From Klebsormidium nitens (taxonomy: Eukaryota > Plantae > Klebsormidiophyceae): DNA of 64,000 nt. The notes under the pieces are model-generated. The model saw only the letters and a program-made list of their open reading frames with translations. It was not told where the DNA came from and ran no database searches. The stretch covers positions 176,589-240,588 of the forward strand of contig DF237018.1 in NCBI GenBank assembly GCA_000708835.1, written 5' to 3'. Position numbers and translations under genes: made by a program. Below, piece after piece: positions 2,770 through 22,334 of the stretch (position 1 is its first letter; every line of letters begins with the position of its first letter).

Positions 2770-5700
2770 TTAGGCTTGCGGCTCCGTGCCGTCATTCAAA
2801 GCGCAGCAGACCGTCGCTTTGTGGTGCCCGCTGTAAACACGAATTGCCTCGCCGGTGCTCAGCTCCCATAAACGTGCAGTGGTGTCCGATGAAGCTGCGG
2901 GGCAATGATTTTGGTCGGTACCGTACTCTCGCGAGGTCAGGTTTTGACAGCGTTTGCATACTGCATGGACGAACTCCCTGAGAAACGACTTCCAGATTAC
3001 GACGAGCGTCAGCTCCTTCTACGGGCCATTTTCGATGGCCGGAGGAGCAAGGCCGTTTCAAAAGGTATCGCTTATTACGCCTTCTTACGGCAGAGAATTC
3101 GAGGAGGGGAAAGGAGAAACACAGTCCCCTGACATGTCGTGCCGCTCTTCTTTCCTGACGGGGCGCAAAGTCAACGACCCGAGGGAAGAACTCTGAAGTA
3201 GATTAGACCTTTCCCACTTCTAACCAGCGGTCAAGCGGTAGCGACGATATTAGAGGACCGGTGATCAGGACGTCTTACCTGTGACTAGATACGCCCCATC
3301 GACCGAGAAGACGCAATCCCACACCCACCGCTGATGACCTGCATGCGGTATAGAGTTGTTAAGCACTCTCGTTCAATACAGCCGCTCATGATGTGGCGGT
3401 TAATCTTCCTTGTACGAGTTTGCACAGGTATCGGGACTCAGTGCAGACGGCCATCTCGCTCTGGTTCAGACGGCTTCAAAGCATGTTGAACAAAACTTGT
3501 ATTGGGGGCTCTTTTCGTGTAGGTCACAAGCATGTGCGCTTTAGCTGAGCAAACAATCTCGCCGCGACTGATTATCAACGTCGCGGCTAGATTACAGTTT
3601 AAGGGACATCCACGTATGACATATTCTGTGACGAAGTACAATAGCAACGGAGGGTTCACGTACTGGACAACACGTACGTAGATTAATTACGTGGGGGCCG
3701 TAGATTAATCCCCCACTGAGGACGGCGAATCGTTGACGACGGGGCCATGATGATCGATCCCACTCACCCACAAGCGTCTTCTCGAGGCCGAATCCGTCGA
3801 CGTTCCAGATGCGCACCGTGTGGTCGGACGAGGTGGTGGCCAGGTACCGGTTGGGTTCGGAGAACTCGGGGCTAAGCAAGCACTTGAGGATGTACCCGTT
3901 GTGCGCGTGCAGCTTGTGCAGCGGCTCGAAGTTGGTCGTCATCTGCACCGAATATTGTCAGTGGCTTTCCTTCTTGGTGTTTGCATCTTTGCATCTCTGC
4001 ATCTTAGGTCTAAGGTAGCAGATGTTTCTACGATTTCAAATCTCCACAATAAATCCGTTCTGCCCGTACAGCTTCGCAGCGGCATGAAGTCGGTCGTCAT
4101 TTTGTTGGGAGACGGACATCAGACTCCTCTATCGGAATACTCGGAGAGCTGGCTTATTAGATCGAATCCATATGGAGGCGGTTCAAGCGTCGAGTGGACC
4201 TCTGATCGTTACAGAAGGTGCCGCCCTTGTGCTGATTCGAAATTAGTCGTAGCCTGCAAGGGCCAGCTCCCAAGCAAATCGTACTCTGAGATGCGAAAGT
4301 TGGAACGCGTCTAAAGATTCTCGTTCTAACTTTCGAAAACTCTGATTTTGAGAGTCGAGTCCTCAGGTCGAGGATTCTTCAGCTCGAGACCGATCGTCAT
4401 CTTAGGAGACAAAGAGAGCGCACACACGAGGCGTTGCAAGGGTCATTAGCTTGGCGAAACACCCAGCACACCGTTCCAAAGGGCTATTCAGACCCACCTT
4501 GCTCCCCTTCGACAGGCGCCACACATAGCACGTCCCGTGGTTATTTGCCGCAACCACGAGGCTCCCATCGTACATCACCGTCAGCGACCGAATGGCGGTA
4601 TCGACTTCCGGAACGAGCTCGCAGCTGCACGAGTTCGCGTTCAGGTCCCACACTCGGATGTTCCCGTTCTGGTCGCCGGAAATGAGCTCCGTTTGGTTGG
4701 GGTGCAGAACGACGGTGTTCACCGCTGCGCGGCTCTCGTACTCGCGCTGGCATCCGGGAGCCCTGGACGAGAGAAGTGAAAACTAATTTACTATGTATTT
4801 CACTGGGTCTAGACCCTAGGTAAGAAGTTCGATTGAGTAGGGTGCAGGGTAAAGCAGGTCGGTGTGAATCGCGTGCAGACTCTGACACTCGCACTGCGGT
4901 CCGCAGGCCCTGGATAGCAAAGTTTCGCAGCTGGTTGATGTCCTGATTATCTGGACTAAAACAATGTCAGTCAGGAGGAGATGGTGTTTACCGACGCGCA
5001 GCTTTTGGCATGCAGTGGTCCTGGAGAAACGGGTTTCGAAACTTCGTTTCAGTGGTGTCTGGTTCAAACCCTGGTCTGGAGCCTGGACTCGAGCCTTCGT
5101 CTGCTGCAGTCTGAATGCACGGTGGATAGTGGCGCTTATTTCCTTCTCGTGTCACACCGAAACGAGTGCTGTAAGACTGGTGGGCCCTATTTCGGACGTT
5201 TTCCATCCTGGACGAGCAAAGCCGAGATCCAAGTTCTGGCTATGAGACCAATCGCGGCCGCACGCGCACTTGTGTAACATGTGTCTCGCGCATCTCGACA
5301 TCTGACAATACCTTCAAGGCGACATCAGAAACCGATGCGCTCGAGCAGCCGCAGACTAGGTTACCTTAGTTCAAAATCGATTTTTGGGTTTGCCCATCCG
5401 AAGAAACAAACTTTCCGAAAACGGGCGAACCAGTCTTATCCACTCGTCAGAGAAGAGTAATAGAGCTACAGAACTCTTCAAATTGGTACCCAAATGGCAT
5501 CTTACCAGGATGTCAATTTTGGCACTGGGGAAATGGAGTCTCCTCAGAACCTTATGAGAACACCATCTTGGCCTGTGCTTTGCAATCCTCCTCTCAGCAA
5601 TTGTCAAATAACCCCCAATCAGAATCCCTTACTATCAGACTCTTAATCAAAAAGGGGCGTAGCACAAACTCACCTGAGGTCCCATATCTTCACCGTGCCA

Positions 5701-14746: not shown

Positions 14747-17700
14747 CTATCGCTGAGCTGACCCTGCCTTAAAATCTTCCCACTTCTCCTTCAAGGCCTC
14801 CCACAGCTCGTTCTTAGCCGGGGGCGTGTAACCCTTCAAATACTGCTCGAAGTAGTTTCTCTTCAACGGCATGCACTTTCCGGGGGTCGGGCCACGGCCC
14901 GCCACTGGCCCCTGTCCAATCAACCTCTCGTTATCCTCCCCCTCAGTGGGGGGCAACTCGTCGCTGTACGGCTCTATAAGGGCCGTCCCCGGGTCTGCGC
15001 GGACCACATATGGGATCAGGGTCTTGAACCACTCAGGCGGAACCCCCGCGCGCGGGTCGATGACGTCAGCGGACTTGTTGCACAGGGCGAAGTCCCGAGA
15101 GAAGGTGTCGCTCCAGTAGCCGCTGACCATGTGCAGGTTAACCTCCAGGTTATGGTAGTACCCGATCGCGTCTTTGTTGTCCAGCGGGTTCCAGCCTGCA
15201 GGGAGCGTCGGGATGACGTCAGCGATGGCCTCCGTCACCATAGAGGCTATGGATGCCGTCAGCGATGGCGTCATCACTCTACAGCTCATGAGATGACGTC
15301 AGCCATGGCGTAGTCATTATAGAATCCATGACATGACGTCAGCGACGGCGTCCGTCGCTCTGAAGTCAATGCTTGAGGTTCGGCTCTCAAGCAGAGTGTT
15401 TTAAAAAAGCAATTGCAGAGACGGTTCGGGTCTAACATTCTGTGTCCCACTTTTAGTGGATCCGGCTGCTCGATGTTTGAATATGGAAACGGGCAAGAGC
15501 GGTCAATCAAACCCCGCCGTGGGCGCTCCAAGACGAAATCGGAAGGCTCAGGAAGAATAGCTCTTTCAAAGACCCATTATCTTATAAGATCTGTCCAAAA
15601 AGCCGTCGAAAGCGAGCACCTCGTGACATCAAAGCCGTCAAAGTGAGAGTCGTCCAGTGTAGATATTGAGGCCAGATTCCTATGCTAACCGGATGGGGCC
15701 ATGTTCTTCATGCAACACCGAACCTAGTTTAATTTGTATCGGAATGACAACCAGTGGTAGGCTCTCGGACCTCGACCTACTCTGTTGGTTCTTATCTGAG
15801 TTAAGAGCCGTGTGCCTTTGAATAGGTGCCAGGAACTGGGTGGGGTTAGTATGTTGGTTAGGGTTGAAACAGGTGTGGAGCGCATTGTCACCCGATTTTG
15901 AGAATCCAGTGGGTCAAGAATACCCACTTCCCAAATGAAGTAAGTTGGCTCTACGGTGAGACACGAATTTTCAGTACTTGCAACCACACACCCCGCGTTA
16001 AGCTTCTCGCTGCCCGGTGCGTCACTCACTCGTCATCTTCTTGAGGTAGTCCACCTCGCGCGAGTCGTGCACGAGCTCCTGTTCGGGCGCCACGTGTTCA
16101 AATGCTGACGGCAGCCCCCACCCGTACCCGATTCCCTCGACCCAGTTGATGATATCGACCACGATGTCGTTGTTGGTGATCGCGGCGAGAATGTAGTAGA
16201 CATTCTGGAGGTAGAACGCCTTGGGGACCTGGGTTACGATGTCGGGTTTGTTAACCACGCGGATTGCGGCGAGCTCATTTTTCTTGTTCCTGCAGAGGGG
16301 GAGCAAAGTCACGGTAAGCGAAGCCGGAGGACAGAAAGAGTGCGTTCGAAAACCTGGGTTACCATACGTTTAGTGAAGCCCGAGAACTGGGTCGAGCCAG
16401 TTGTCAGTGTTTCTGCGGAGGGAGGCTGAGGTATCGGGCTTGAAGGAGAGGGGATCTTCTAGAATGAAACCCATTGCACGCAGGTGTCGAGTTCGTCAGT
16501 CACGCGGATGGCGAGCACATTAACGTTCTCGGCGCAACGGAAGGCGAAAGGAGCGTTGTGCGGAGGAATGTAAGAGGTTTCTCCTTGTCAAACCTGGGTA
16601 GTAATCCCTATTGTCAACGACTCACTTCGCGACGCTGTCTGAGTCATTAGTAGGGGTCAGGAATGGTCGTGAGCGGCGGATATTTTCACCTGAGCGAATC
16701 TGGAGAGCTGGGTTGCATGTCGGACTCTTTATCAATTGTGAGTCGCCTGTTGTTTACGAATCCTGCCTTTTCCGAGGAAAACAGCAGCACCCTACTGAAC
16801 AGACGCCTTGCGGGAGCTACAAAACAAGCACTCCAAAGCAAGCCGAACATTTCGTTTTATCCCTTCCGTTTGACCCGTCCCCGACTCCTGGTGCCGCTTG
16901 GAGCGAATCGAAACGCTTGGATGTGCAACGGCCGCTCTTTTTGCGAAACACAAACGCTGGTTTTCGACCAGTAAACACCGACCTGTCGCTTCCGGTTCGC
17001 TAAATTCAAGAGACGCGAGGCGCGAACTTTCCACTCACGCTGCGAACGACGCCTTGAACCTGGGATTGCCCACGCGGGGCGCCTCGAACGCGAAGCACGC
17101 GACCGGAACCCGCGTGACTCCGTCCGGCCTCAGATTATATCCGCTCTCGACTATGTCATACGCGCTCAGCACCGCGAGCGCGCCGCCCAAACTGTGCCCC
17201 GTCACGCTGATCGTCCGAGCCTCTGGATATTCGCTCAGCAGCTGGGGTATGGTCTCGTGAATCACTTTCTGCAAGCAGGACGTCGGTGTTCAGGAGCCTT
17301 CTTCCTTCGATGAGAGGGGGAGTCCCCTTGCTGGGTAGTGCACGCGGAGTCGGTCCTGTATTTACGCTTAGCGCGGATCTACAAGGTGGATCGCACAGAT
17401 CCCTGGATGCATATTCGATTAATAGATTTCTGGCAGCCCGAACCGTTCGAAGAATAATCTGCCCACAAACGGAGATGTCAGAGTCTACAAGTCGACATCT
17501 CAAAGACGCCGAGATTCACTGAAACGGTCCTGCCCGACAGGTGCATCCTGTGTCAAACGTGCACCTCACAAAGCCCTCCCTTTTGGTGACCTTGTGACAT
17601 CGGATACTTACGCCTTGCAAACGACAGAGCTTGGAAGGCTAAACCCCTTCAAAATCTCAAGACACCTGGAAAGACTTCCTCGACTGGAGCAGTGTTCGGG

Positions 17701-20700
17701 GTCTTAAGTGCGCTCATATCCCATGTCTAATCCACCCGCACATAAGAAAAGGCTCACATCATAGACCCTCAAAAGTGGCAAAACTCACCCGGGGGAACTT
17801 CCCCTGCGTCTCCTTGGCCTTGGGCAACTTGGGGGCCTTGTTCGGATCCCCGGTCGGGTCGTACAGCTCAAAGAACCCCTCGTGCACCTGCGGCACGTCC
17901 CCGGCTGACTCCCACGCCTCCGCTGCGGCCGTGGCGCCGGTCGGTAGAAGCACCGCGATGATGAAGATGAGCTTATCGACGGTCCAAAACTGGTCGCCAG
18001 GGTTCACCAGGTTGAGGAACGCCGTCAGCACGCCCACCGCGATCGCGTAGGACGTCACGAAGCCCCCCACTTTGCCCTTCTCTAGTTCGGGCCAGAACTG
18101 GAAAAGGTCCGGGAGCAATTTGGGGCCGAACTTGGAGATGGGCAGTGCGGCGACGGCGCCGAACGCGGCATTGAGAAGGGAGCCCAGGAGACTCTCCGAC
18201 TCAACCAGTTTGGCGAAGATGTAGAAGAAGCCGGCAATGATCCCCGCTGAGACCCCGCCCAAGAACGTGGCGCCCACAAACGCGAGCGCGCCGTACCCGG
18301 CTTTGGAAAGGTAGGTCAAAGCGTCTCCCAGCGGGGGGGAGTCCTTGTCTTCAGTGGAGCCCTTGTCCCCTGCAAGGTCCGTTGATCCAGCGAGATCCTT
18401 CTTCCCTACAGTAGGTGCTACGAACTTTTTGTAGGGTATGAGGCCGACCCTGCAAGAAAGAAGGAGGATGATGAAACAGGGAGCTGCCTAGTGGAGGGAC
18501 GTCTTGCTCCGCCTCTGTGCAATTTTAGGGTGGTTGCGTTATGAAAGAGGAAGCACGAGCCACCCAGTCCAGAGAACTGCGACTACATCTGCCTCAAAAC
18601 TCAGCAGGCGACTCAGCTGGCTGAGACTACGACGTTGCACAAGAAGGAGGGCACCACTGGGACTCTACGGACATATGCAAGCAGGGGACTTTCCATTCTG
18701 ACCTGAAACAGGACTGCCACATCACAGAGAAGACACGATTAGCAGAGAACTCAGGCCACGTATCTGACTTACTCTGCGTCGGCCACCCATTCCGCGGGTT
18801 GCTGCGTCCCGCGCCACCCAACAACGATGTCTCGTTTGGTCTTGCTATAAGCTATGTACCCGATCCACACGTCCTCCTGCATATCTTGGCCCTTATCGGC
18901 CTTTACGGCCCGGATCACCTTCGTTTTCTCGCTCGCATACATATAAGCGACGGCCTCGTATCCCTCCCCCGGGAGGTGTTCGAAATAGGAGGGGACCTTC
19001 AGGTTTTCCCCGAAGAGATTGCTGGGCACCAGGTCTTTGCCGACTTTCTTGGTGTATCTGCAGCGGGGAAGAGAGTGTCAAGAGAGTAGCTGAGGTCCCA
19101 GGAACTTAATAAGTCAGTTGATTAGTTAGTTAACTTCATTGACAGATAGTTAGTCAATTAGTCAGTCGGTTACTCTTCCTCAGCGCTATTTGAGCTTTCA
19201 AGGATTCAACATGTTGAAGACGCCGGTGTTATGGGCAGTTGTAGACATCTGTGAAGTAAGAAGCTGGCCCTTCGAATGCTAGAAAATCCTTTGCGATGTT
19301 TACTCACAGTCTCCTCTGCTGCGAGGGTGATCAATCATAGCACCTATGACCAACATTCCAAAGAGGAGTGGCTTTCTCACGTTGAAGAAGCAGGACAGTG
19401 TCTGACACAGTGAACGTGCTTAGACATACTTTAGATGACAAAAGCCTTTGGTCTATGTCATGCTCCAAAGACAGGGTACAAAGATGCTTCCAACACGAAC
19501 CTACTCACTGAAAAGGCAAAGTAGATGGATGGACGAAACTAAAACAAAGAACAGAAACAGAACGAGGCAGAAAACTAGGCTGAGCGCATCTCATTACCGG
19601 TTCTGGGAGCGGTAGCGGCTCCATTCGTACAGATCCACGCTGTCGTACGTCAGCTGCGCCATCTCGCCGTACTTGATGATTGTCTTCTTCAGGTCTGGGT
19701 CAAGTGTGCCCGGGTCACCGTTTTCGCCCTTAATAGGAAGAAGGCCAGCCCAGTTGCTCTTGCCATGGAGCTCCAGCCACTTCGGATCATCATCGTCTGA
19801 GTCGCCCTTTACGACGGTCTGCAAGATTCACAGGAACATTGTTTTGTGGCTTTTTGGGGTAATTTGAACTTGGGATTTTCTAGAGATGAAAATTCCAGAG
19901 ATGAAAAGCTCAGCCAGTGGGGCTCAGAAAGGTCGCCCTTGGTGCCAGTCTACACCAGTAAAATGTTGAAGGAGTCGTACGGAAAGAGCTAGAAGATTTG
20001 TCCTTTTGAGATTTGGATTTCAGATTTGATTTTCCTTTGGAGTTTATCCTTTGTGGTAGTCTAGATTGAGCAGGAACTGTTGACGGTCTGCACCCTTGCA
20101 TTCTTTCCTTCAAGTAGCAAATAGCAAGTAGAGAGATGCGTTTTGTGGAGACATGAAAGACAAGTGAAGGAATGAGATGGATGCGAGTCTTTCTACATTT
20201 GCAACTGTGCAACAGGTTTTCTTAGCTCCTTCTGCCAAGTCCCATTCATGAGAGTGGTTATTATGGGCAAGGTTGGGGGGGGGAGGCATTGTGCAAGTCT
20301 GAAATGAGGGATTAAGGTGCAGCGACGCTACAAGAAACAGACTGCAGTGGCGGCAAAGGGCATTTGATCTAAAGTTGATTCAATTGAGTAGACCCCCTAT
20401 GGTGTTTGACAGGAGGGAAGATGTTGTCAGACCAAAACCAGAGAATCATAGGGAGCCTAAGACGAATCCCCTTACAATTCCCCCTACTTTTGAGATCCCA
20501 TTTCTTAGGAAGTAAATGCAGTGTGTTTTCGTGTATGAAGAATCATATAGTCCTGCTTGAATCTTTCATGATTTTAGGGCTGCTTCAATTGTAATGAGTG
20601 CGTAGACTGGGTCCCTTAAGATGCCAGCTCCTTTAAAGAGCTGTAGAGGAAGAAAGAAGGATAAATTATGCACCTGGCCAAGTATTCTAAAAAATTCAAG

Positions 20701-21469
20701 AACCCTCCATGAAAAGAGGTAGATTGACAAGGAGAGCTACACTAGTTGACTGACCAATTGCTTTCCTTGCAGAACCAAGATTCTGAGCTCTGTCTGAGCA
20801 TCCTTTCATGGGCCTATTTGGCACATTCATGATGACAGCTACCGATCTTGAAAACAGATTGAGTTCTTTGCGCTGATATGAACTCCCCTTTACTTTGAGA
20901 TCCGCATTGTTGCTACTCAGGTTGCTTTGTCATTACAGGAATCACCAATTTCCAGTCTTGCAGCTGCCACTTCCATTGATGGACAATTGCCTCAAAGTTT
21001 GGATTCTGGACGTCTCAGCCGATACTGAATTGCCCCATATGGCAGTCCACTTCTTTGTGTCAATCATCCTGGCCCCCTCTCTGATTTAGTCAACAAATCA
21101 ATGCAATCTCAATGATTGAGGGGCGAGCAACAATCTCTAACTTAGGCAATGCAAGCCAAGTTGCTTTGAGATAACAATGTACACAAAAAGTTGCTCAGGT
21201 CTGCCACAGCCATTACGTCTATCCCTGCTGCCATCACCCACCTTGGGCGCTGATGTCGACACCGCCTGTGCTCGGGCAATCGGCGCAGGCCTCGAGCGAC
21301 GAATCTTGGAGCCCTCCGCCGATTGAGAAAGCTTCCCCCCAAAGAAGGGAGTGCCCCTCAGCAATGTGGGAGCTCGCAGATTGGCTGGGCCCGCTCTTGT
21401 TGCTAATGCAGGCCCCAGAGAAAATAGAGTGGGGGCGAGCGCACAGGGCGCAACTGACGAGCAGGCCAT
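14747..21469 (-). CDS. Plastid-targeted DAD1-like phospholipase A1 (class 3 lipase) with a large hydrophobic insertion, 7 exons
   Basis: Exons 21469-21242 (Ser/Ala/Arg-rich transit-peptide-like), 19818-19598, 19057-18773, 18449-17789, 17268-17039, 16289-16030 and 15195-14747, with phases matching. Motifs W.ELHGKSNWAGLL, IIKYGEMAQ.TYD, WIGYIA, RDIVVGWRGT..EW, VHEGF..LY, TGHSLGGALA (Ser), RVVNKPDIV (Asp), YHNLE (His) and RDFALCNK. Confidence 0.9.
15211..15365. repeat. 40-bp-period degenerate tandem array (about 4 units) with ATGACGTCAGC core, in the last PLA1 intron
   Basis: Units start at 15211, 15251, 15291 and 15331: ggatgacgtcagcgatggcc.., ggatgccgtcagcgatggcg.., agatgacgtcagccatggcg.., acatgacgtcagcgacggcg.. 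Confidence 0.85.
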
Positions 21470-22334
21470 GACTTGTGTGGAGTTCTTGGTCTGGCAAATT
21501 CTTGCTGGCTTTTTTATGCACGTCTTCGCTTTGATTTGTGAAATGAGCTCAATTGTGGGGAAAATAGCAATGTGACAAAGTAGCTGGTCAAACTCTGGGA
21601 CCGATTGCTGCACATGAGTCCCCGGACTTCAGGCAGATCGGAGAGATGCAGCAGAACGGTTGCAGGGAAGGGGAGGCAATCAGCTTAGCCTTAGGATCAA
21701 GCAGGACGAAGAGCGAAAGAGAAGCCTCGATGTGAATGATGGAACTTGGAAGTGGATAACGAAGGAGCAGTAATATAATTCGTTTTGCACAGTTGGTTCC
21801 ATTCCCCCAATGATGACATGTTAGCAAATGCTGCGTTTGAGTCTCCAGAGGTCGCCATAAGCGCCCGATTACAAGCAGTGTAACTGTATTATGTTGCATG
21901 AGAGTGATCAACCGGACCGACTCCAACAAATCCACCGGCTGTGACCGGGTATTTAGAAAAGTTAGAAACACTGGATCGCAGGTGCTGGATAGCCAAGCCG
22001 ACGAATCCGGCAAGAAGCCCGCAAGAAGTCGGCTTCGGAGGCAGGTGGTCGACATCCAGGGAAGGTAGGTAGGTAGTCGGCTTTGAGCCGACTTTTCCAC
22101 AAGTGTGTGGCGACCCCTGCGTTTGACTCTCGGAGCTCTGGCTTGGCCAATCCAAGCCGTTCATGATCCTCAGCGCATTCATCGTACGGTTCATATCAGT
22201 GACCGGGAGTCTCCCTCATCCACTGCCCTGTCGGCGAATGATTGGTAGACTCGGTTTAGAGGGGGATTCCGTGCCGAGGGAACGATGTCGCCTACGTTCG
22301 CAGTTCCGGCCGGAAAGCCGGAAACTGGCTGGGA

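Follow-up and report, generated by a model that had tools for sequence, protein, structure and literature searches.

In animals, DAGL-alpha and DAGL-beta combine a class-3 lipase domain with four membrane helices and act as permanently membrane-resident sn-1 lipases. In FAAH, the helices alpha18-alpha19 form a hydrophobic helical cap at the substrate entrance of an otherwise soluble fold, and lipid enters from the bilayer. The DAD1-type phospholipases A1 (PLA1s) of land plants are soluble, and the membrane recruitment and control of these enzymes are poorly understood. The lid domain of one plant PLA1, AtDSEL, includes P159 and L160 (the “QPLEW” turn) and is followed by the beta4-beta5 pair (PMC9000616). 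Here we describe a lipase gene of Klebsormidium nitens, KFL_000690360, which lies on the minus strand of a 64,000-nucleotide window (contig DF237018.1, positions 176,589 to 240,588; coordinates below are those of the window) and carries an insert with four hydrophobic helices in the lid region.

The protein shares the Lipase_3 domain, the motifs W-x-E-x-x-G..W-x-G-L-L and YGE-AQ-YD, and an N-terminus resembling a transit peptide with the land-plant DAD1-like PLA1s of class I (DAD1, DGL, PLA1-Igamma1/2). [quoted passage not shown] It differs from the land-plant enzymes in an additional C-terminal extension of low model confidence and, above all, in the lid region. For size counts and for the AlphaFold2 model we used alignment A5, in which every sequence had been trimmed to the WxExxG motif; A3 and A4 were left out because MAFFT had slid the plant N-terminal halves into the insert. 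In K. nitens, 186 residues lie between E245 and Q432, that is, from the lid helix (EWVADAE) to VHEGF. The same interval measures 148-211 residues in insert-bearing relatives, compared with 12-18 residues in 23 land-plant class I/II PLA1s and 31-33 in class III PLA1s. These counts bear out the sequence-only reading, made from the letters of the window without database searches, which had proposed a four-helix hydrophobic insert of about 180 residues in a place where land-plant enzymes have a short segment. KFL_000690360 thus falls outside the short-lid range of the plant PLA1 family (12-18 residues from the lid helix to the VxVxxGF strand).

A HMMER comparison with the crystal structure of AtPLA1-IIgamma (2yij) places the insert within the fold: query residues 89-251 pair with chain residues 22-173 and query residues 427-568 with chain residues 180-312, so that 175 residues occupy the place of a 6-residue loop. 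Because the lid domain of AtDSEL precedes the beta4-beta5 pair, we assign the insert to the tip of the beta-hairpin right after the lid helix. The suggestion that the lid had become a membrane anchor is supported with a refinement: the lid helix EWVADAE is retained, and it is the hairpin after it that has gained the insert, at its tip.

The comparisons with DAGL and FAAH are functional analogies. In DAGL the four helices are N-terminal to the catalytic fold, whereas in KFL_000690360 they span residues 295-424, inside the fold, between WRGT (231) and GHSLG (489). FAAH has an unrelated amidase-signature fold and one short helix-turn-helix cap, in contrast to four predicted helices of 22-42 residues here. 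Neither the profile search nor Pfam detected sequence kinship of the insert to any other protein, the DAGL type included. The architecture had not been recognised at first reading, and literature searches by accession, for Klebsormidium together with DAD1/PLA1, and for class-3 lipases with transmembrane and lid found nothing on the architecture or the protein.

Six-frame translation recovered the peptides quoted in the sequence-only reading from the minus strand, at the same coordinates, and together with RNA joints it defines a gene of seven exons, as follows.

21242..21469, minus strand: exon 1, coding part, M1-K76 (joint 19818/21242 in 4/4 RNA runs; translation equals residues 1-76)
19598..19818, minus strand: exon A, with the plant-PLA1 N-terminal motifs WLELHG..WAGLL and YGEMAQLTYD (RNA joints, motif scan, alignment to 2yij)
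18773..19057, minus strand: exon B, ending VVGWRGTQQPAEWVADA(E), the pre-lid strand and lid helix (joints 19057/19598 and 18449/18773)
17789..18449, minus strand: exon C, residues 245/246-465, with the head VGLIPYKKFVAPT, the insert, and a tail with VHEGFFELY (RNA contigs; canonical splice sites)
17039..17268, minus strand: exon D, with the GHSLG nucleophile elbow; Ser491 codon 17191-17193 (Pfam Lipase_3 1.5e-17; RNA joints)
16030..16289, minus strand: exon E, with VVNKPDIV; Asp558 codon 16241-16243 (joint 16289/17039; aligns to the LPDVI segment of AtPLA1-IIgamma)
14747..15195, minus strand: exon F, with YHNLEVNLH and the C-terminal domain; His643 codon 15152-15154 (the loose end at 16029 continues into exon F in 4/4 runs)
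14747-14749, minus strand: stop codon TAG (translation)

All six introns have GT..AG borders and pyrimidine-rich acceptors. The concatenated, translated exons equal GAQ81058.1 (KFL_000690360; 777 aa; UniProt A0A1Y1HYW8), deposited as “hypothetical protein KFL_000690360 [Klebsormidium nitens]”, and the insert is part of that public model, exon C being 100% identical to its residues 246-465. This entry (label P0013) surfaced in a word search with a relative, and the full-length query is this database entry. Exon B aligns to the WRGS..LEWVEDFE segment of AtPLA1-IIgamma. The interval from WRGT..EWVADAE to VHEGFFELY had been read as one open exon, which is right for the linker, the four hydrophobic stretches and VHEGFFELY, all within 17789-18449, but not for WRGT..EWVADAE, which belongs to the preceding exon (18773-19057), across a 323-nucleotide intron.

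The insert exon is transcribed whole. Contigs of four public runs (X1, X8, X11 and X13), from four studies, were placed on 15900-21600; runs labelled “RNA?” were taken as RNA because their contigs are spliced. Exon C is one continuous block of 660 nucleotides (17789-18448/9) in the main contig of each run, and these main spliced contigs have word depths of 77-520. The joints 16289/17039, 17268/17789, 18449/18773, 19057/19598 and 19818/21242 are found in a high-depth contig of every run, an X13 contig of 3,227 nucleotides joins exon 1 through exon E and continues into exon F, and intron coverage comes from low-depth fragments only (depth 2-8). No joint inside exon C was found in the contigs of the four runs, which may hide rare isoforms. 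Since exon C is unbroken in spliced RNA, its hydrophobic part is not an intron. Independent RNA evidence comes from a 650-aa Trinity transcript of Klebsormidium subtile (P0004), which likewise keeps the insert, so that the outcome named beforehand as fatal to the insert, its removal by splicing, is not what the RNA of K. nitens and K. subtile shows. Furthermore, the guanine-cytosine (GC) content at codon positions 1/2/3 of the insert is 0.62/0.46/0.81, and that of the flanking exons is 0.60/0.37/0.73 (B) and 0.62/0.49/0.78 (D), compared with about 0.5, flat in every frame, in three neighbouring introns. The insert is confirmed as genuine coding sequence, beyond a chance open frame.

The polar linker and all four hydrophobic stretches noted at first reading were located in exon C. 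Their parts are listed below with the maximum Kyte-Doolittle 19-mer value (KD, threshold >1.6), the Wimley-White octanol sum (WW, threshold <0), and the AlphaFold2 helix or predicted local distance difference test score (pLDDT).

18302..18409, minus strand: polar acidic linker V259-K294, about 36 residues, low-complexity and fast-evolving (pLDDT <50; identity to relatives 22-44%)
18203..18301, minus strand: helix H1, A295-V327 (KD 1.92; WW octanol -5.8; AlphaFold2 helix 288-327)
18191-18202, minus strand: acidic tip ESES, between H1 and H2 (sequence)
18131..18190, minus strand: helix H2, L332-K351, with a conserved ALP motif (KD 1.68; WW -2.8; AlphaFold2 helix 330-356)
18071..18130, minus strand: loop 2-3, F352-K371, Lys-rich (alignments; grown to about 60 charged residues in some relatives)
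18005..18070, minus strand: helix H3, V372-V393 (KD 1.91; WW -6.4; AlphaFold2 helix 372-393)
17972-18004, minus strand: tip NPGDQFWTVDK, between H3 and H4 (sequence)
17912..17971, minus strand: helix H4, L405-W424, with a conserved LLPTG..AA.EAW motif (KD 1.88; WW -4.3; AlphaFold2 helix 396-426)

After H4, EAWESAGDVPQ leads to the VHEGF strand. All four segments exceed both the Kyte-Doolittle and the Wimley-White thresholds, and with Eisenberg mean hydrophobicities of 0.52-0.70 and moments of 0.08-0.21 (0.70 and 0.11 for H1) they fall in the transmembrane zone and are not surface-amphipathic. Outside the insert no segment lies below +6.0 on the Hessa scale, a cut-off that the nucleophile elbow alone reaches. 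AlphaFold2 predicts the four helices at pLDDT 78-92 in the full protein, with lengths of 22-42 residues; for the insert alone the mean pLDDT is 84.6, and turns of 2 residues between H1 and H2 and between H3 and H4 give two antiparallel hairpins. A lack of predicted membrane helices had been set down as a finding that speaks against the insert; hydropathy and AlphaFold2 both give four. The charges are distributed unevenly: in 8 sequences the lipase-side segments carry 5-16 Lys+Arg, compared with 0-2 in the two hairpin tips together, which are acidic, and loop 2-3 has 2-14 Lys+Arg versus 0-1 per hairpin tip. The even number of helices, in two hairpins, and the Lys+Arg bias to the lipase side fit an integral topology.

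Next we consider how far the insert extends beyond this gene. A word search with the exon returned three open reading frames (P0001-P0003) of 44-61% identity. An insert profile run against 1.84 billion representatives matched 12 proteins at E <=0.001, 11 of which are the same exon of lipase genes: five close ones (type A), ending GPQVHEGFYELYDPTGD, and six distant ones (“type B” and others), ending G-E-G-P-x-VHEGFWxLYNN, at E values of 3e-13 to 6e-5. The remaining match is weak: a protein of 1510 aa, over 32-residue stretches only (E 4.5e-4). Apart from the K. subtile transcript, the lipase matches are single-exon open reading frames called on contigs of eukaryotes, which come from two Joint Genome Institute metagenomes and a single sequencing run. 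At 7/7 fetched loci, from two subfamilies, the insert exon stands between the WRGT exon and the GHSLG exon. One sample holds at least 4 different insert-bearing copies, and because several distinct copies occur in one sample, the insert would be older than the family expansion. Parachlorella and land-plant proteins have a short loop at the insert position, and no insert was found in annotated proteins of other named algae or plants. The possibility that the same insert is common in described algal PLA1s is thus not borne out: its profile matched only 12 of 1.84 billion representatives, none of them from a named alga beyond Klebsormidium.

Within the insert, conservation is higher in the helices and tips than in the linker and in loop 2-3: H4 reaches 65-80% identity in type-A relatives, equal to the catalytic exons, compared with 22-44% for the linker, and P348 in H2 is nearly invariant across 12 aligned sequences. 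The linker and loop 2-3 vary in length via short charged tandem repeats, of the PPKTEG or PPxTEG type in the linker (P0003:20-85, L003) and with runs of the KEKEEGEGGG type in loop 2-3 (P0002/P0004).

Two of the fetched loci have features of their own. L001, a metagenome orthologue, is colinear with KFL_000690360 exon by exon at 69-78% nucleotide identity, and no synteny between the window and L001 was found beyond the gene. At about 5046-5048 it has an in-frame stop for the W of EWVADA (WRGTQQPAE-stop-VADG), which may mark a pseudogene, a variant or a sequencing error. In L002 (Logan run SRR23617307) the acceptor and the first ~60 nucleotides of the insert exon are duplicated (520-586 and 640-706); the duplicate lies 120 nucleotides upstream at 76% identity (CGCAG/GGTC..ATGTCCTAC.TGAAGTACGACCC) and may be a copy that has decayed, or else an alternative 3′ splice site.

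A donor for the insert, the search for which had been proposed from the sequence, did not emerge as a free-standing protein, a Pfam family or a fold relative. Pfam gave only inconsistent sub-threshold matches for seven insert sequences (MFS_1_like for one insert, MotA_ExbB and Tom7 for another), and the ESM Atlas feature search with the insert gave no usable match. The best fold relatives had Z 6.5 in the PDB and a template modelling score <0.5 in the Atlas, both under the noise level of helical bundles. A word search of the full-length protein restricted to the insert returned only the protein itself. An origin by internal duplication found no support on comparison of hairpin 1 with hairpin 2 (hhalign probability 1%, E 0.054). 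Taken together, the insert is real, transcribed, hydrophobic and conserved within the Klebsormidium lineage, and it has no detectable donor.

The enzyme around the insert looks complete. Pfam Lipase_3 (PF01764) matches GAQ81058.1 at 98 bits against a gathering cut-off of 22, and exon D alone at 64 bits. The nearest named relatives are land-plant PLA1-Igamma1/2 (26-34% identity), and the nearest solved ones are AtPLA1-IIgamma/AtDSEL and CaPLA1 (E ~1e-28). The AlphaFold2 model (predicted template modelling score 0.74) superimposes on AtDSEL (7x0c_A) with Z 39.0 over 337/402 residues at 32% identity, and fungal class-3 lipases reach only Z ~21. AtDSEL has S236/D302/H339 as its catalytic triad (PMC9000616). 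Ser491 (GHSLG), Asp558 (NKPDIV) and His643 (YHNLE) align with it and with the triad segments of AtPLA1-IIgamma, in agreement with the intact triad noted at first reading. Domain, motifs, triad and predicted fold place KFL_000690360 among the DAD1/PLA1-type class-3 acylhydrolases. The N-terminal segment of residues 1-76 has abundant Ala, Ser, Arg and Pro and a single acidic residue, and is 59% conserved in the L001 orthologue; judged from composition only, it looks like a plastid transit peptide. The C-terminal extension, about 70 residues (~681-749; 14750-14990) beyond the region alignable to plant PLA1 structures, has pLDDT 35-45 followed by a short confident helix.

We consider it most likely, with a probability of about 0.6, that the insert is a lineage-specific membrane anchor of ~175 residues at the mouth of the active site, which would keep this PLA1 permanently embedded in lipid. 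Under this hypothesis, the short loop at the tip of the lid beta-hairpin (EWVADAE to VHEGF) would have been replaced by a module made of a flexible polar linker and four hydrophobic helices in two tight antiparallel hairpins, and the enzyme would reside in the lipid phase, probably of a plastid membrane. On one membrane face would lie loop 2-3, rich in Lys, together with the lipase domain, and the acidic hairpin tips would extend to the other; with an even count of helices, the chain would come back to its starting side and leave the catalytic fold intact. The module would keep the active-site mouth at the bilayer, substrate would come by diffusing laterally and not by recruitment of a soluble enzyme to the interface, and the lid helix, which is retained and hangs on a flexible linker, could still be used as a gate. 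Membrane integration, topology, plastid location and sn-1 lipase activity are what we infer for KFL_000690360.

An extended version of this model, which we hold only tentatively and regard as rather unlikely, is that the four helices form an intramembrane bundle whose interior or edge leads acyl chains laterally out of the bilayer to the catalytic pocket, so that this class-3 lipase would reach its substrate from within the membrane. In that version the module would be a de novo product of the Klebsormidium lineage, formed in an enzyme loop and older than the split into two subfamilies, and sensitivity to membrane state (desiccation, cold, wounding) would gate the step with which fatty-acid release towards oxylipins begins in this early-diverging streptophyte.

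Several observations weigh against the membrane anchor. Approximate, position-independent Hessa translocon sums are marginal (H1 +1.3, H2 +4.0, H3 +1.5, H4 +3.3 kcal/mol); on this scale H1 and H3 are comparable to the usual helices of multi-span proteins, and H2 and H4 score weakly. The helices are rich in Gly and Ala, with Pro besides in H2 and H4, and the hydrophobic run of H1, at 33 residues, exceeds one membrane span. The alignment under the AlphaFold2 insert model is shallow (8-12 sequences), and plastid targeting is read from N-terminal composition alone. Furthermore, Nei-Gojobori omega, the ratio of nonsynonymous to synonymous divergence (dN/dS), is 0.65-0.99 in the helices compared with 0.30-0.36 in the catalytic flanks (against L002 and L003), a relative measure only, as these values are distorted by saturation and by strong GC bias at third codon positions, which compresses synonymous divergence. 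L001, whose lid helix contains an in-frame stop, was left out of this comparison. By nonsynonymous divergence the helices change 2-3 times faster than the catalytic flanks, so that constraint would act on helix character more than on specific residues.

Some of these points would suit a monotopic anchor, whose two hairpins would enter a single leaflet, or the monolayer of a lipid droplet or plastoglobule, and not cross it, in the manner of the FAAH membrane cap and of the hydrophobic hairpins in proteins of lipid droplets. The marginal translocon-scale hydrophobicity, especially of H2 and H4, the Pro conserved within both, the 2-residue hairpin turns of the AlphaFold2 model and an H1 too long for a single span are all in its favour, but it would bury the conserved charges at both tips (ESES; N-P-x-D..D-K) in the hydrophobic core at high cost, and the modelled helices, at 22-42 residues, have bilayer-spanning length. 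Given these charges and helix lengths, we favour an integral anchor with four spans and think a monotopic one unlikely. It is less probable still that the helices serve no membrane at all and that the lipase is soluble or peripherally bound, with the four of them building an enlarged hydrophobic cap, an oligomerisation bundle or a substrate tunnel. Helical cap insertions are frequent in alpha/beta-hydrolases, and helices rich in small residues suit tight packing. Plant PLA1 dimers do form by hydrophobic contacts (PMC9000616). A soluble four-helix bundle needs polar faces, however, and these helices combine near-zero amphipathicity (moment 0.08-0.21) with high mean hydrophobicity; among predicted structures, membrane proteins make up almost all of their closest, though weak, neighbours.

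The remaining alternatives concern the transcript. An in-frame GT at 18409 and an AG at 17888 bracket exactly the linker and the four helices, and removal of these 522 nucleotides (17888-18409; 174 codons, V259-Q432) as an exitron in a minority of transcripts would give ...KKFVAPT/VHEGF..., with 13 residues from E245 to V433, within the land-plant range of 12-18, and hence a soluble isoform. We hold this to be very improbable: the joint is absent from the contigs of the four RNA runs, although contigs drop rare variants, the donor GTAGGG is weak, and the acceptor lacks a pyrimidine tract, unlike those of the six real introns. Nor can the AG be conserved in type-B relatives, where VHEGF is preceded by R or F and not by the Q (CAG) of this gene. 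Hardly credible, finally, is an annotation or assembly artefact in which an intron or a nested gene is read through by chance. The region's GC content is high, and more than one of its frames is open over long distances, but the exon is whole in spliced contigs of four studies, its codon-position GC equals that of the flanking exons, it is kept in frame in 11 other sequences, and both the deposited protein and the K. subtile transcript contain it.

With the integral membrane anchor as our preferred reading, the finding bears on an alga that is a reference for the move of plants onto land. Klebsormidium has a working allene oxide synthase (PMC13364333), and in land plants DAD1-type PLA1s carry out the lipase step that frees plastid fatty acids for jasmonate/oxylipin synthesis (PMC13364333, PMC8079949). 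By analogy, we infer that KFL_000690360 may release fatty acids for oxylipin synthesis or membrane remodelling. Family membership, from which alone substrate and physiology are taken here, suggests that these are possibly C18/C16 polyunsaturated acids taken off plastid lipids and feeding the KfAOS pathway.

A natural PLA1 seemingly set in the membrane by its lid hairpin provides a test case, already at hand, for the interfacial activation of class-3 lipases, and the insert would be a clear case of a membrane module that has arisen inside an enzyme loop with no detectable donor. It also warns that orthology tables of the jasmonate pathway conceal large architectural differences.

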